DNA of 64,000 nt from Bigelowiella natans CCMP2755 (GCA_000320545.1 ADNK01000862.1:62001-126000), one strand, 5' to 3'. Positions 41,447-49,548 are shown, numbered from the stretch's first letter. Notes: generated by a model from the sequence alone, not told the origin. Numbers and translations are program-made.

Positions 41447-42577
41447 ATGGCCACAATCATCTGCTGGCATCGTCGACGCGTCTCGCCCTCTCGTTCGAGC
41501 CTCGTACATTCGATGCGCCTGGCACTTATGCTCCCGCTTTTTGCAAGCCTATGCTCCACCACAAGCATTAGGGTGGGATCTACAGGCCTCCGTACTGCTG
41601 CTACTATATCGGCTCCTCTGCGCAGGATGGCCGGATTGGACTACAGGTCACGTGGTCTCTCAACTTCCGCTGCTGCATCTAGCACGCCTTGTCCCCTCGT
41701 TGAGACACCCCTGCATACGGCCACCTTTGGAATGGGATGATTTTGGCATCCCGAGGTAAAGTGTCTCTATTCATATCCCCCCTTGAACATTTGAAGTCTG
41801 CGATATGTGACGTGACAAAGAATTACATCCTGGCTGCCCTACTTGCATCACAGGTTACTTTTTCCCCGTCGCGGGTAAAAGGTGTTCTCGGGTGAGCTTG
41901 CTTTATTCTGTTCCTGTATGCTGATTATTCTGATTACTCTTTATGCTTTCTAGAGACTATCATTCTGCCAAACAGACTCATTTCTTCTCCGTAGGACTCG
42001 AGTTGGATATTCGGGAGGATTGACTTCTTTCCCAACTTACCGATCTATGGGAGACCACACTGAGTGTATCCAGGTTGGAATATATTATCCTAAAAAGAGA
42101 CCCTATTTGAGCAGAATTTCACACACAAAGGCAACCGTATGATATTATCGTAGGTGATATATAACCCGGAGGAAATCAAATACGATGACCTGCTTGAGGT
42201 AAAAACAACAACAATGACGCTTAGAAGTGGCGAGTACTTCTTCTAATTTTTTTCATCGTTAACTTCACAAAATCTTGCTCCCATAAAAAATCAACTCTTC
42301 CAAATTCGACTTGTGTGCATTCTAGATTATGTTCAAGGAACATGGAGGCTATCTGTCAAAGCCGTATTCAGTTCAGTACCGCAGCGGGGTGTGGTATCAG
42401 GACGAAGATCAGAAGAATGCCGTCGATGCTAAGATTAAAGAAATAGAACAAGCGACTGGACGGAAGGTCTTCACACACGTTGCCCCGCTCAGCGACTTCT
42501 ACATGGCGGAAGAATACCATCAAAAATACATGGAGAAGAATAGAGCGTCGTCACCTTTCGGTGGGTTCTTCTCGTAA
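41447..42577 (+). CDS. msrA: Selenoprotein peptide-methionine-S-sulfoxide reductase MsrA (Sec at in-frame TGA 41738-41740), with signal/transit-peptide-like leader
   Basis: TATFGMG-TGA-FWHPE places TGA at the catalytic position of GCFW. Further exons TRVGYSGG..PTYRSMGDHTECIQ|VIYNPEEIKYDDLLE|..QYRSGVWY..FYMAEEYHQKY; stop TAA 42575-42577; SECIS downstream. Confidence 0.93.
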
Positions 42578-42833: not shown

Positions 42834-43285
42834 ACCAGTGCAATGACGAACCCCAATTCAAAGGGCAATGATGCATGCGCGAACGCACAGCAAATTTGAA
42901 CCCGTCTTGCTAGCTTGCATGTCATGTGGTTTGCAAATTGGAAAAAATGAAACTTGCAAACGGACAGTGCAACCCAGCATGGCATTGCTTTTTTCCGATC
43001 ATGCAGATCGCCACAGATCTGTCTAGCCATGACAATCTAGCAATGCATGATTGCACTGGTTGGCCTCTGCATGCATGTGGCCTCGATCTCTGTCTGAGTC
43101 GATGGCAGTTTCACACTTTGCATGCGCAGCGTTCATGCGTTGCCACAATGAATTTTTGATGTTTTCCGCATGTTTTGTGACACAATGGCTCGCAGGACAA
43201 TGAACAATGAACAATGAACAATGAACAAAAGCGTTGATCAAATCTACATGCGCAAGAACCACATGGATTCACCCGAACTGTTCGC
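42834..43285. other. TpA-depleted tract including a (TGAACAA)n array at ~43197-43229
   Basis: Four TA in about 450 bp: three ctag and one ctac. Confidence 0.8.
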
Positions 43286-43852
43286 TAATTTTGTGATTTT
43301 TAAACTCGTAAAGATCGAGATTCACAGTCTTAGGTTTGGTATCATTTGGACTGAATATTCGGAACGAATTCCCAACATTTTATTTAGGAGCGTCTAACCC
43401 GAATAAATGTCGTACGCCTCTTTTGCCTCAATTCAATAAACATAATGAGATTTCTGTACTGCGACAACGATTATCTGTGTCATCACATTGCAAAGGTCAA
43501 AGTCGAAAATCTTCGGATTTCCTAGGATTTCCTAGGATTTCCTAATTTCTTTCCATTTCTTTTTTTTAATGAATTGCTGACACCGGACAATTCCTAAATT
43601 GTTGTGCTAGGTTTCGATCCTCCTACCAAAAGTCGCATGAAAGAAATGCCATTGAATGTATTTCATTTTCAGTCAGAGAATTCTGTTGCAATTGCAAAAA
43701 ATGTTGCAAGTCCGAGATGCGTGAAGAAAAACAAGCACGCATTTTTCACAATTAAAGATTTTATTTCTGACGCACGCTACGAAGGCAGGCTGTTTTTGTT
43801 AGCCTCCCTTGGCGATCCTTACCAAATATCATCCTCACAAACCTCAAGGACG

Positions 43853-46800
43853 ATGAGATCGGAAGATGAGATTTTTGCAGATAGTGTGTTAGCAGATCCA
43901 AACCAAGAAAATAGGATGGAAGTAGATGATAGTGGTGAAATCAGTGTAGATCGTGCACCTCAGAATACCCTTGCAATCATCAAATCTGAGAACTATGAAG
44001 GAGAGGTTAAATTGCGTAACAAAATGTTGGTTACGTTTGCAGCTGTCCATCCATTCGAGATAAAGCGTGATGATGTATTTAAGGCGTACTTTAAAGATGC
44101 TTCACCATTATACGAAAGATTAATAAAACCGGATGAGGAAATGAAAATCCAACTCATGTATGAATCTCGTCGACCCGTTAGGGATCTTACGAAAGATAGC
44201 TGGACCGAAAACGCCAAAGCTCGTGCAGAGAAATTGGATAACGAGATGGGGGAGAAAAACGCTTACTTTCGTTTAACTGATGCAAAGGTACCAGAATGCT
44301 AACGAAAGATGATATGATGACTCCCTAAAATTTCTCTGAATTTATTGGTCTTTCGGTTTTCAACTTCTCGCTGAAGTAGTTGACATTCCTTAGGGAAAAT
44401 TTTTAACAATAGAGAGGATGAGTGATGGGAAAACATGCTACACAGCCCCCAATGCGCTTTATGGTTCAACCAAAATGAAAGAACAGGGATCTAATAAGGA
44501 ATCACAACGTCCCCGGGAGGACCAAAAAGGCGGTGAGGATGCTCAGAGTGGCTGGGGGAAAATTGCTCAATTCTTTGAAAAGCTCCCCGAAGTCCTCAGC
44601 AAATTTCGTCAAATTATCATACCATTCGTTTCACCCAATACACTTACTCAAACCTGTACATCCAGTATGACTTCCCAGGGAAAGGAAATGATATAATAAA
44701 TGCAAAAGAAGTTCGCGGTCCAGCTTTCCACTTAATCCCTAAAGGAAATATTTACGGAAGAAAGGTCTTATCTGTATTTAAGTGCAGTGAAAATTTTGAT
44801 TTACTAAGCGAATTCTTCATTAGTATTTTGTTGTATCGGATATGCGGGAAAAGAAGAACATTAAGCTACTGACTGAATATGGTAGAACCGTTATCGCAAC
44901 ATCATAAACCGAGTTGATCTGTCATAATAACAGAAGATGATGATGTTTCGTTCAATGTCTATTCTTACGAGTTGGATGGAAAACCTGCGATAGGATTTTC
45001 AGCTCAACAGGCAACTTATCCCTTCTAGCTTTATATTAGTTTAGTCAGGCTTCCAACGTTGCAGGTTCAAAGTTTATTTCCCGAACTAGTGGAGGATCAT
45101 GACGGAAAAATAATGGTTGACATAGTGGGATTGATGGCTGCCACCTTCTTGAAGATGCAAAAATACCAATTTAAGATTCGGAATAATCAAAATGAGATAA
45201 AGGAAGAAATAGACAATCTTAAGTCTAAACTGTTCGTTGTGAGTACTAAGGTCAAGGTGAGTACAAATTTTTTAAACAAGCTAACATGAAAACTTACTCT
45301 TTATTTGTATCTTGCAGCGCTGTTTGGAGAGCAAATCAAGTCTGATCATACCAAATTCAACTGCTGATCTCTTGATGGACCATCTCAGTGATGACGGCAA
45401 AAACGCTATTGAGTGTCAGAGAAAGCCACTGAAACTTTATAATTATCAGCAAAAAGCCGTTGAAAAATTCAGAGGAGACAATATAATCGTTGTCTTGGGA
45501 ACAGGGATGGGGAAAACTTTAATAGCAGTGAAGGCGATTGAGCATGTGATGAGAACGAAACAAAGTGCAAAGATTATGTTTGTAGTGCCGAACAATTCTC
45601 TTTTAGAGCAGCAAGCAAACTACGTAAGAAAGCATTTGACATTAAAAGACGGCGAGCAAGTAACAATTTCTACCTTGGCAGCTGAGGTTGCTGATTAGAA
45701 CGATATCTCCTAACATCACCGGCATTAAATAAGTTACATGTGTTTGTGTGCTTGTGTGTTGTTTATTGCTTAAGTTAACATACCGGTTTGATAATAACCA
45801 ATGGGAAGAAGTTGTGTCCGTCAGCGACGTAATGATGGGAACACCTCAAATTTTCTATGACGCTGTTTCTTACGGGTAAGCCCAACAACACATTTTCGTA
45901 CATATTCAAAGTCATGTTCTATGAAAAGATATCTGAATCTGGAGAAAGTTGATCTCCTTATCCTTGACGAAGTGCACAACGCAAAGAAGAAAAGTGCTAT
46001 GGCGAAGCTGTGTGAGGTACACAACGTGGCCAGATGCTTCAATAATTCTTACTCAGAGCAGCTTCAAAATGTCTTTGAAGGAATTTCGAAAACTGGAATC
46101 GTCTCCAAGGATTCTTGGTCTCACAGCTTCCCCGATAAATACAAAGGATTCAATCCCTGCAGAAGATATGAAAACTCTGCAAAAGGTTGTGCAGGCACAG
46201 ATTTGGGTACACGACGGAATTGAGAAAAAAAGGGAAAGAAAAATCGATTTCGAGGAAATATTCTACGTACAACAAGACCAGCCTCTCCCTTCAAAATATT
46301 CACTGACAGATCTCCTGGCTGGAATAAATTTGAAGAAAAAGGACATCCTCATAAAATCCCAGAGGACAGTCTACAAAGAATTGGGAGAGAGTGCCTTTTT
46401 ACACCATGTGAAGATCGCTTGGCCAAAAATGTTTGGGCAAAAAATTGAAGTGAGTGCCACCTTTCTTTATTCCATGACACCACAACGAATCTTTTTTCTC
46501 ATGTTATTCTTTTAGCTTTTCAAAATGCTTCGCTATCAATGCAAGGATTCGAGTCGATCGGAGAAAATTTCGGCCAAATTAGAAGCATATGAGGAGGCAT
46601 ACAAAAACTATCGAAAGAAACTTGCAACCCTGTCATGGAGTGACCAAAAAAATGCATATTCTGATAAATTGCAGAAATTGCTTTCAAAATTAGAACAAGA
46701 AAAGTCATCGAAAACAATTATATTTGTCAAAGAACGTGTGCTGGTGTATCCTCTGGTGCACACTATAAATGAATTTTTCCGGTAAATGCAAAGCAGAGTC

Positions 46801-48924
46801 GCACTTAGTGAAACTAAAATGTGGTGAGAAGTCGGTTTTTCACGTCGACCGCGGCCCTTTTGCGAGAGCAATAATATTTTTGTGCCATTATTTTTATTTA
46901 GGTGCCACATCGTTTGTGATTCTGCTGTTCTTTACTGATTTTGTGCACTGAAACTCTTTGTCTTAAACATCGTTCTGAAGATATCAAAATCCCTATTTGA
47001 TACTAGAAGAGAAATCTGTGGTGGCATCATGAGTACAAGCCATCAGTCATTCGAAGAGCACAAAAAAGTGAAAGGAAACTTTCGGGGATCGCGTTTGAGA
47101 ATCTTAGTGTCTTCCCCAGTTGGGGACGAGGTTTGTTTATTTATTAAAACCAGCTCCAGCTCTTATTTCTTGACTGTATTTAGGGACTAGATTTTCCAAT
47201 GTGCAGTTGCATATTTCTGTTTAGCAAAGCAGAGAACCGTCTTCAGTGGATTCAAAAGTTGGGAAGAGCTCGAGCAGAGAATTCGAAAGTATATCGAAAA
47301 AATCCCAAACAAAAAGACAGATGGTCAAAAGTTGAAGTTGATGAACTAACATTATAGGCCTTCATCTTCGAAAACAATGTAAATGAGGAAGAAGCTGCAA
47401 GGAGGGAAATGAAACGTGTTTCTCGAGATCCCTCCATACAGGCTGTTGAAGAGGAGCTGATTAATGTGCAACATTTACGACTCCTTATTTCCGCTAATCC
47501 GTCAGCAATTTTGTGGTTCTAAGGAACGTAAAAGAACACAAGCTGATTCACTGGATCATTTCTTTGCGGAGGGCAAGGGGAAAGTGAACCTTTCTAATTC
47601 TCAGATCATGTACGAAGGGTACTGTGCCAAGGTTTGTCCCTTTGTGGTTGACAGAAGTTTTCTATGTAGCCCCCTGTATATACAAATGGAAGTGAAAAGG
47701 CGCGTTTAAATTTTTAATTAAATCTAGGCTATGAGTAGGATGAATAGGTCTCAGGATGGAATGTGGGAATATAATATCAAAGGACAAAAGGTATTAGTGC
47801 TTAGATCTAACTACAATGCCTTGATTGTTGGGTATTGTAATTTGCAGCGCATAGTCGTGAGTTTGTCGTTTCCAACTCCAAGTGGAATCAAGAACATAAG
47901 TATTGCTGCAATGCAAGGATGCAAGCCTAAGGTCGTAGAAATGTTTTCACTTTTGTAAATGTTGAATTATAAATTTTGGACCAGCTACGAAATAATGGCC
48001 TGCCTTTCAACAAACTTGCAAAATCGTATCTCTGCTATCTTGCAATGATCAGACTACACAGAGAAGGTCAGCATTACTTTTGATGGTGTGATGTACATCA
48101 AATAATAGTACAATTAGGGCTGCTGGACAATTACGGAAAACCGCTTCTGAATCTTTCTCAATGCGAAGAAATCAGCAATTCTTGCAAACAACTTGTTCAC
48201 GAACGTGTCGATGGTGCGCTAAAATTGACACTTCCGCAGTCGGTTGCCACAGGAAGGAATGTGACCACACAAAAGGAAAACAACATCATTGATTCTTTTT
48301 TGGCTCACAAAAATGTTGGAAAATCGAATGGTGATGACGTGCTTTCAGAAGATGCAAAATCAAGCATCTGCACATTGCATTCCACTGGTGAGACACATGT
48401 GGTGATGGCAGCTTCATCTTCCCAGCCACAAAAAGCTAAAAGAATGGCACAACAGTCAGAAGCGAAAAATCGTAGAAGTATGTCCTCAGAAATAGACAGT
48501 CACGACAGAAGTAGTAGCTGCATGGAAATGCCGGAAAGGAAGTCCTCGTTGCCTGTTTCCTTTTGGAACATTTTTATCTTTTTCCTTGTCTTCATCTTTC
48601 CTTTGTGCTTCTCCTTGACGTTTGTTTGAAGCTCTGTTCTGTGCCCGAATTTGTTGCCACCGAGTGAACGCTTCTTCTACACATTTACGCAACCATCTAG
48701 CGACCATGCATGGTGACAATTGCTACAAGATTGAAAATTTGGTCAGGAGAAGGAGAAATATATATATATATATATATATACATACATATATATATTTCGG
48801 CATCTTGGTTTTCATCAATGAGTGCTTCATCCGTCATCTGAAATTGTACTCGACAGCAAAGACGTATTGTCAAAGCACCTTCGTTTTGGTGAACCCCCAA
48901 ATCTCAGCCACATCATGCATTTAG
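43853..48924 (+). CDS. Fusion protein: unknown N-terminal domain + peptidase S74 (intramolecular chaperone) + coiled coil + Dicer-type DExD/H helicase + DUF283; no PAZ/RNase III seen; 3' end uncertain (48629 or 48924)
   Basis: GNIYGRK|YFVVSDMREKKNI (44745-44862), IGFSAQQ|VQSLFPELV, coil NNQNEIKEEIDNLKSKL. Helicase: LYNYQ, LGTGMGKT, GTPQIF, LILDEVH, ILGLTASP, IIFVKER, VGDE|GLDFP, WIQKLGRARAENS. DUF283-like: VNLSNSQIMYEGYCAK ... KLAKSYLCYLAMIRLHRE|GLLDNY. Confidence 0.85.
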
Positions 48925-49548
48925 CGTGGCTCACAATTCTTAGCTTCTCAATGTATTCGCGCAACAGTAGCCATAGAACATCTATTACTATTGCAGTGTG
49001 TACAAAATATGAAATAAATCTACTGTGAGAGATGGATGTAAAAAATCGCGAGACACTTGCATGTCAGGTCTGCGATATCGATGTGCAGGGTACATGCACA
49101 CAAACACTTTTTAAATGCATGAAGCACATGACAGCTCAGAGAAATAGACATCACACAGATGAGCGCTGCAGCCGTTGCTTTGCATAGCGGTACATAGCTA
49201 GATACGATGGCTAACAAAAAGATTTGATGAAGTTGCAAGCAGAAGTATGCTCAATGTCTACATGACCATGCTCTGGATGAATCTGTCGCAAACCCCAATC
49301 GACATGTTTGTGGTCATAGTTTTATTAAAGCCATCATTGTGCGCATGCCTACAAATCTAAACATGGTTTCAATGCAGCCGCGTTACTACTGCGACACATT
49401 GTCTTACATGTTGTCGACGAGAGGAGCATGAAAATAATTAAATCATGCACAAAGTTTAAGTATGCATGATGTGTGTTCAAATGAACAAAAGTGCCAGCAT
49501 TTCATCAAGTTGTCATTGTTCAGATGTTGTCTGCATTTCATGCCGTGT

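Follow-up and report, generated by a model that had tools for sequence, protein, structure and literature searches.

A Candidate Self-Cleaving S74/ICA Module Joined to a Dicer-Type Helicase in the Alga Bigelowiella natans

ICA modules are known as discarded chaperones of viral fibers; animals and Dictyostelium use them to release the transcription factor MYRF from the endoplasmic reticulum (ER). Bigelowiella natans is a marine alga of the chlorarachniophytes, and in a 64,000-nucleotide stretch of strain CCMP2755 (GCA_000320545.1, ADNK01000862.1:62001-126000; hereafter the window, with positions counted from its first letter) we analyzed a gene in which what we read as such a module lies upstream of a helicase related to that of Dicer. 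The ICA domain of MYRF, which is followed by a leucine zipper, cleaves itself in a trimerization-dependent manner, the N-terminal trimer leaving the ER membrane while the C-terminal oligomer stays; in the ICA proteins studied, cleavage follows folding and trimerization, and gating by a ligand is not known (PMC3742443). We lean, if narrowly, toward regarding the B. natans product as a MYRF-type tethered, self-cleaving precursor of 1145 amino acids (aa) whose retained half is an RNA helicase.

The predicted protein resembles MYRF and MrfA in the order of its parts, an ICA (S74) domain with a Ser/Lys dyad, then a coiled coil or zipper, then a putative membrane anchor C-terminal to the ICA domain, and in its predicted products, an N-terminal trimer that is soluble and a C-terminal one held in the membrane. 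It differs from them in that about 870 residues, comprising the Dicer-type helicase and a DUF283-like domain, lie between ICA and anchor, in that the anchor sits at the very C-terminus and no lumenal domain follows it, and in that the retained fragment would be an enzyme. Membership of the MYRF family was rejected since Pfam detected no Ndt80/PhoG-type DNA-binding domain, and the protein is therefore described here only as one that would work like MYRF. The ICA modules of phage tailspikes and tail fibers (K1F endosialidase type) and of the collagen-S74 fiber genes in polinton-like viruses and virophages belong to the same Pfam family (PF13884) and show the same motifs, but the viral module is C-terminal and discarded after fiber folding, whereas that of B. 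natans is internal and would stay on the helicase, with no collagen, lectin, or beta-helix fiber recognizable upstream.

On the helicase side, the protein aligns colinearly with Dicer from Hel1 through Hel2i, Hel2, and the pincer into DUF283, but it has no PAZ or RNase III domain and its transcript closes instead with a linker and a hydrophobic tail. RIG-I-like receptors (RLRs) as well as the nematode Dicer-related helicases DRH-1/3 are likewise stand-alone helicases of this clade without nuclease domains, some with N-terminal signaling domains. An assignment to the RLRs was rejected, however, because neither their C-terminal domain (CTD, PF11648) on exon 19 nor a CARD on exons 1-2 was found, whereas true RLRs among the helicase matches do show PF11648; a DUF283-like domain stands in place of the zinc-binding CTD, and Dicer matches outscore RLR matches. 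An earlier note on this DNA, made from the sequence alone, did not recognize the architecture, and the literature that we searched likewise contains no account of S74 fused to a helicase or of ICA fused to Dicer. Each part has been seen before; what is new is their combination.

A single nuclear transcription unit

The gene is real, expressed, and nuclear, and spliced RNA contigs, transcript contigs, and poly(A) reads place all of its parts on a single plus-strand mRNA of 19 exons (approximately 43831-48875; table 1). The host region is eukaryotic in character with short introns, and the open reading frame (ORF) was obtained by joining three forward frames at GT..AG boundaries. The coding sequence (43853-48629) comprises 1145 codons with a single terminal stop, as verified by a frame check of the joined exons. 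Three assemblies with 5' ends at 43831-43836 back the start ATG at 43853, the 5' untranslated region (UTR) reaching 43852; the stop is a TGA at 48627-48629, and raw RNA-seq reads show poly(A) added at about 48874-48877, 250 nt past it. The extent of 43853-48150 given in the earlier note is thus right at its start and too short at its end, where the hydrophobic tail was missed. Exon concatenation was used for the frame check, residue count, motif placement, and hydropathy; queries for database work on the gene were individual exons, ORFs occurring naturally in transcripts, or proteins from databases, and whole-genome searches covered the 91.4-Mb B. natans assembly.

In 20 public RNA runs, 39-67% of the sampled words of 43500-48800 were present (at least half in 19 of them), which roughly matches the proportion of exons. 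For mapping onto 43300-48900 we used the contigs of three runs, each from a different study, together with raw reads of one RNA-seq run. The RNA contigs skip the predicted introns exactly and yielded 15 listed splice joints, 14 of them GT..AG and one listed as CA..TG with four ambiguous bases, which matches the GC..AG intron 45011-45064; the joints set the starts of the exons at 46081 and 47524. Two long contigs (2205 nt from 43900, run X3; 2274 nt from 43831, run X4) reach 46781 and so comprise exons 1-11, from the N-terminal region through the SDMREK motif described below and the coiled coil up to the first lobe of the helicase. A natural ORF across exons 6-8 (P0001) led to two JGI transcript contigs, L010 (4513 nt) and L011 (4343 nt), which align at 99.5% identity and each span 43836-48789 unbroken with some introns retained.

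Because the spliced contigs join the exons and both JGI contigs carry the parts in one piece, we treat the locus as one transcription unit, in keeping with the phase-compatible exons of the earlier note and contrary to separate or untranscribed genes. That two neighboring genes or a mis-assembly have been read as one has a next to negligible probability. Nothing was found in its favor, the one weak point of the single-gene model being a break of the Logan contigs at the 225-nt intron, which is alternatively spliced; against it, the two long contigs come from different studies, joints connect every later exon, the JGI contigs run through unbroken, P0001 is a natural ORF, and a second organism has the same part order on one 4.2-kb transcript. 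Two genes or a chimera were accordingly rejected on the transcripts.

Three introns are absent from the 15 listed joints. The intron at 44592-44665 is backed by RNA loose ends and is spliced out in both JGI contigs, and for those at 44882-44933 and 47131-47183 the grounds are the reading frame, the splice sites, and an ORF of 1145 codons without interruption. The JGI contigs retain the introns at 44882-44933 and 45011-45064. For the 225-nt intron, the spliced joint and read-through contigs (46752-47035) occur at similar depth in three runs, retention making up some 40-50% of the signal if contig depth is taken as a rough measure. Retention brings a TAA immediately after exon 11 (read-through translation R*) and would give a predicted isoform of 751 aa without Hel2, DUF283-like domain, and tail, that is, one both truncated and untethered.

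The S74/ICA module in two organisms

The S74-coiled coil-helicase core is also present in a second organism. Exhaustive phmmer searching with exon 7, in which only a self fragment scored above 61 bits, returned at rank 21 a 293-aa ORF (P0021) on a 4220-nt transcript contig from another JGI sample (L030). Pfam recognizes Peptidase_S74 at its residues 55-113 (29.2 bits against a cut-off of 22), and a coiled coil follows, then ResIII/DEAD from residue 190; later ORFs of the contig hold the remaining helicase, Helicase_C, and the same post-helicase domain. The two organisms share 39% identity in the helicase and 31% overall against the exon 6-8 ORF.

In B. natans the motif is spread over exon 4 (19 aa), exon 5 (26 aa), and exon 6 (64 aa). 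Ser249 (TCG, 44836-44838) and Lys254 (AAG, 44851-44853) bound the sequence SDMREK (aa 249-254), and the full dyad pattern, S-D-x-R-x-K then K-x-N-I, reads SDMREKKNI here and SDPRLKDNV in the second organism, both dyads falling in the invariant SDRRxK column of an alignment of viral S74 domains. Further on, a GC..AG intron (45011-45064) separates the motif halves IGFSAQQ and VQSLFPELV, and a heptad-like stretch, NQNEIKEEIDNLKSKL, lies at 45185-45232.

Exons 4, 5, and 6 align to residues 56-71, 84-105, and 108-155 of P0021, consecutively and colinearly (permutation p of 0.054, 0.004, and <0.001). A local S74 hidden Markov model (HMM), for which P0021 was combined with eight S74 domains from viruses and from the B. 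natans genome itself, gave the three exons 3.9, 4.1, and 11.0 bits, or ranks 4, 2, and 1 when the window was cut into its 3012 six-frame segments, and placed them at model positions 4-19, 39-57, and 57-113 in agreement with a family-column alignment. Searching PDB by phmmer with the S74 pieces and with the orthologous module gave nothing significant. An AlphaFold2 (AF2) model of the P0021 module, computed as a monomer of what in ICA folds is an intertwined trimer, reached a mean predicted local distance difference test (pLDDT) score of 71.6, with the helix at 108-165 above 90. Foldseek with this model placed MyRF ICA (7DC3) in the top three positions of 350,542 PDB chains (probability 0.87-0.91, 125 columns, 21-22% identity, TM 0.37-0.47), making it the best structural match of the orthologous module; a wide VIA search with the same model was swamped by coiled coils.

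We read the module as a true ICA domain, which the family profile shows for the orthologue and the homology of the single exons, in colinear order, for B. natans, and the most likely behavior predicted for it is trimerization and autocleavage before Ser249. ICA proteins carry a chaperoned triple beta-helix directly before the cleavage serine. The 35 residues ahead of the serine look alike by eye in the two species (AF..G....RK.Y..SD; printed as AFHLIPKGNIYGRKYFVV in B. natans and AFGIDEHGDGKFRKLYLR in P0021, each followed by SD), a likeness that would fit such a beta-helix, and the exon-3 alignment to P0021 taken alone is not significant.

The genome of B. natans also holds two tandem, intron-poor collagen-repeat genes with a C-terminal Peptidase_S74 (40.4 bits; L001 and L002, C3187:130462-135310), whose S74 domains share 39-40% identity with IMG/VR viral contigs; a word-indexed protein search with the S74 domain of this fiber type matched two proteins. 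Both genes look as if they encode fibers of a virus or virophage-like element that has integrated. In protist genomes, integrated polinton-like viruses and virophages commonly have S74 domains on their fiber genes (PMC12220804), which together with the two tandem genes makes such elements a plausible source of the module. The same facts, with the low scores of the B. natans domain exon by exon, would also suit a captured fiber fragment that no longer cleaves and serves at most for oligomerization or as a linker in an ordinary Dicer-related helicase. We hold this to be very unlikely: both species have preserved the dyad, K-x-N-I/V, G-F-x-A, and the helix start PE-x-V although their overall identity is only about 31%, which argues for selection on the catalytic site, and in the second species the module scores above the Pfam cut-off.

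Dicer-type helicase, DUF283-like domain, and tail

The helicase motifs, GTGMGKT (motif I, 45498-45518), DEVH (motif II, 45966-45977), TAS (motif III, 46123-46131), and QKLGRAR (motif VI, 47253-47273), lie where the earlier note had placed them, as do the SDMREK codons and the halves IGFSAQQ and VQSLFPELV. Pfam scored exon 7 as ResIII (51 bits) and DEAD (38 bits). In PDB the exon 6-8 ORF found plant DCL4, an ancestral Dicer helicase, and DCL3 first, with RIG-I, DRH, and MDA5 next, and the Hel2 ORF of the second organism found the ancestral Dicer helicase and animal Dicers ahead of LGP2 and RIG-I. Aligned by hhalign to a profile of seven Dicers, exon 10 fell at 179-283 and exon 11 at 377-420 in P0058 numbering, and tblastn with Dicer proteins matched exons 7, 10, and 13. 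These comparisons identify a Dicer-type helicase with a Hel2i insertion, a member by sequence of the Dicer/RLR clade nearer to Dicer; it has no paralogue in the B. natans genome. Two marine-protist helicases of the same clade (P0019 and P0035) carry N-terminal extensions of 300-430 aa with the motif ADLxEW...PGDVV...VVSxxPA...GxVPVxVxG...FLVPS..DGxA, which has no Pfam or PDB sequence match; Dicer-type helicases may have a further recurring fusion partner in this extension.

The domain after the helicase, with landmarks FPTPSG (47869-47886) and IRLHREGLLD (48048-48128), is conserved between B. natans and the second organism. Against the seven-Dicer profile, exons 13-17 (L011:2976-3509) aligned by hhalign with a probability of 96.7% (E 3.9e-10) in a stretch that begins at motif VI, crosses the pincer, and reaches P0058 562-613, where Pfam puts Dicer_dimer at 567-651, and the L030 piece reached 99.5% over the same span. 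The last-helix pieces had their best local matches at P0058 621-653 and 622-641 among 1863 profile columns, the latter from exon 18 at 40% identity. Pfam Dicer_dimer (PF03368) matched no piece from either organism, and neither a local Dicer_dimer HMM from three seeds nor exon-wise Smith-Waterman against known DUF283 domains was significant. A DUF283-like nature of this domain is supported but not proven. Of the Pfam matches that the earlier note expected, then, ResIII and DEAD appeared, Helicase_C was weak on the B. natans exons, and Dicer_dimer was silent; its order of parts, an S74/ICA module with a Ser/Lys dyad upstream of a complete Dicer/RIG-I-clade helicase and a DUF283-like domain, is borne out by colinear alignments and profile matches.

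Exon-by-exon Pfam searching matched neither PAZ nor RNase III. No nuclease exons are spliced on downstream, since the stop codon lies at 48627-48629 and poly(A) follows 250 nt on, so that a Dicer with further RNase III exons was ruled out and the nuclease-free form proposed in the earlier note stands; the protein is not a Dicer. An RNase III Dicer gene lies elsewhere in the genome (56614-64414 of C1128; L031, L032), and all RNase III matches of the genome are on contigs other than that of the S74-helicase gene. The C1128 gene starts with a Dicer_dimer domain (30.7 bits), followed by a weak match to an AEP primase-polymerase and two RNase III domains; no helicase was detectable in the 8.6 kb upstream, where the neighbor is a dynein light chain gene. 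When a complete Dicer was searched against all six frames of the genome, the sole match to the Hel1 motif-I region was the S74-helicase gene. The two halves of a canonical Dicer are on different genes in B. natans.

A helicase-less RNase III Dicer in the same genome opens a further interpretation, in which the S74-helicase gene supplies the helicase and DUF283 half in trans, ICA and coiled coil mainly build a stable trimeric, membrane-bound helicase platform, and the N-terminal piece acts as propeptide or as template for folding and has no role of its own. The layout of the C1128 gene, the single Hel1 match, and a core of ICA, helicase, and DUF283-like domain common to both species, whose ends are not, all speak for it. 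We nevertheless regard it as fairly unlikely, as a DUF283-type domain on both genes is not what simple fission would leave, helicase-less Dicers occur in many protists that lack a partner of this kind, and phage ICA modules are normally discarded after cleavage rather than kept as scaffolds.

Exon 19 is continuous in RNA contigs over 48116-48742. The hydrophobic tail that it encodes reaches a 19-residue Kyte-Doolittle mean of up to 2.75 and is the sole strong peak of the protein, a window at aa 409 barely exceeding 1.6. It lies some 770 residues past the coiled coil, a hydrophobic segment C-terminal to the ICA module as in MYRF-type proteins, and looks like a tail anchor. This position points to a MYRF-like layout, with a tethered precursor and a soluble N-terminal product. 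The last part of the second organism's contig (L030:3597-4190) ends in a nonhydrophobic sequence (...MLKDIVRLNRLI) that by eye resembles a double-stranded RNA (dsRNA)-binding motif and has no Pfam match.

Other observations concern the surroundings. A peptide methionine sulfoxide reductase exon (Pfam PMSR, 57 bits; 42329-42577) lies upstream on the same strand and belongs to a separate gene, because transcripts of the helicase gene begin at about 43831. A TA-rich simple repeat in the 3' UTR (48743-48800), reading IYIYIY in one frame, is where RNA contigs stop, and Rfam gave no match over 43000-49500.

Table 1. Parts of the S74-helicase gene and their positions in the window
Feature	Position	Strand	Remarks
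Exons 1-4	43831-44287, 44394-44591, 44666-44764, 44824-44881	+	
Exons 5-8	44934-45010, 45065-45256, 45318-45686, 45775-45875	+	
Exons 9-12	45929-46016, 46081-46449, 46516-46781, 47007-47130	+	
Exons 13-16	47184-47288, 47358-47465, 47524-47631, 47728-47790	+	
Exons 17-19	47848-47931, 47985-48066, 48118 to poly(A) site	+	
GC..AG intron, 54 nt	45011-45064	+	joint 45007->45062 with four ambiguous bases, in three runs
Longest intron, 225 nt	46782-47006	+	both spliced and retained forms in RNA
Orphan N-terminal region, aa 1-211	43853-44591	+	exons 1-2; acidic start, strand-rich middle, K/E/Q-rich linker
Segment just before the putative cleavage serine, aa 212-248	44666-44835	+	exon 3 and start of exon 4; intron 44765-44823 inside
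Putative S74/ICA chaperone-protease module and coiled coil, aa 249-353	44836-45256	+	exons 4-6
Dicer/RIG-I-clade SF2 helicase core, aa 354-827	45318-47288	+	exons 7-13; Hel1, Hel2i, Hel2
Post-helicase region, aa 828 to ~990	47358-48150	+	exon 14 to start of exon 19; pincer-like helix, DUF283-like (dsRBD-like) domain
Serine- and lysine-rich linker, ~aa 990-1122	48151-48557	+	no Pfam family above noise on exon 19
Hydrophobic C-terminal tail SFWNIFIFFLVFIFPLCFSLTFV, 23 residues, aa 1123-1145 and TGA	48558-48629	+	candidate tail anchor

Tethering, cleavage, and the released part

As a MYRF-type precursor, the protein would be inserted into a membrane by its tail with all remaining parts cytosolic. 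ICA module and coiled coil would trimerize it, and Ser249 would attack the bond preceding it, yielding a soluble N-terminal trimer (aa 1-248) and a membrane-held trimeric fragment of S74, helicase, and DUF283-like domain that may bind or translocate on dsRNA. Cleavage would most likely be constitutive on folding, as in MYRF and phage tailspikes, and the RNase III Dicer, which has no helicase, may be served in trans by the helicase fragment.

The part that cleavage would set free has few recognizable features. Pfam assigned no family to aa 1-264 at E values up to 10, a word-indexed search of proteins of 152-483 aa with the natural 276-aa N-terminal ORF found no homologue, the B. natans genome holds no paralogue, and an Atlas search returned no neighbor. 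An AF2 model of the first 263 aa had a mean pLDDT of 37 with no confident fold, and the NDT80-like fold considered in the earlier note thus found no backing there or among Pfam DNA-binding families. A released N-terminal effector is possible for a region with no Pfam match, homologue, or similarity between the species, but its poor conservation argues against a conserved one, and we argue that the conserved function sits in the ICA-helicase-DUF283 core.

Several observations weigh against the tethered, self-cleaving precursor. The N-terminal region has no BLASTP similarity to the N-terminal ORF of L030. Peptidase_S74 had no Pfam match in the B. natans gene exon by exon, a silence that we ascribe to the two introns that cut the domain and to scoring per exon; the S74 profile match foreseen in the earlier note failed in that form and was obtained with the local HMM and in the second organism. 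The structural match to 7DC3 is weak in absolute terms (E ~0.1, VIA Z 4.3). In the collections searched the fusion occurs in only two organisms; a word-indexed protein search with P0021 gave nothing new, and pattern scans of metagenome and viral contigs found no further S74-helicase fusions. Finally, the hydrophobic tail was not seen in L030, for which reason we limit tethering to the B. natans sequence, where it may be specific to this species or a chance product of a T-rich 3' coding end.

The same architecture invites an RNA-gated switch, in which dsRNA binding gathers precursors, the ICA modules trimerize and cut only then, and the N-terminal trimer is a signaling or transcriptional effector. 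Every part needed is on one polypeptide, ICA cleavage depends on trimerization (PMC3742443), the helicase is of a clade whose members assemble on dsRNA, and a membrane tether would hold the N-terminal part inactive before the cut. Even so, we judge such a switch unlikely, for no studied ICA domain is ligand-gated and the adjacent coiled coil should trimerize the protein unaided, and the supposed effector has no recognizable DNA-binding or signaling fold, is dissimilar to the N-terminal ORF of the second species, and goes with a tail not seen there. Distinctly doubtful, to our mind, is the specific sequence of events in which a membrane-tethered helicase assembling on dsRNA triggers self-cleavage of a phage-derived ICA domain with the N-terminal trimer as output. 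The earlier note had proposed that oligomerization or cleavage is driven by RNA binding, and an antiviral role; both are possible, with no support past the architecture. If true, dsRNA-triggered ICA cleavage would let a single protein lead by proteolysis from the recognition of RNA to a response, which differs from both RNA interference and RLR-MAVS signaling.

Taken as the tethered precursor that we favor, the fusion suggests that a MYRF-like cut-and-release step has been coupled to RNA handling. If the protein is cleaved, it would represent a second, independent eukaryotic use of a viral self-cleaving module, for RNA handling instead of transcription. The gene would then be a simple test case for how Dicer helicases act apart from the nuclease, for whether ICA cleavage is open to regulation, and for the ways in which viral fiber genes lying integrated in protist genomes feed domain invention.

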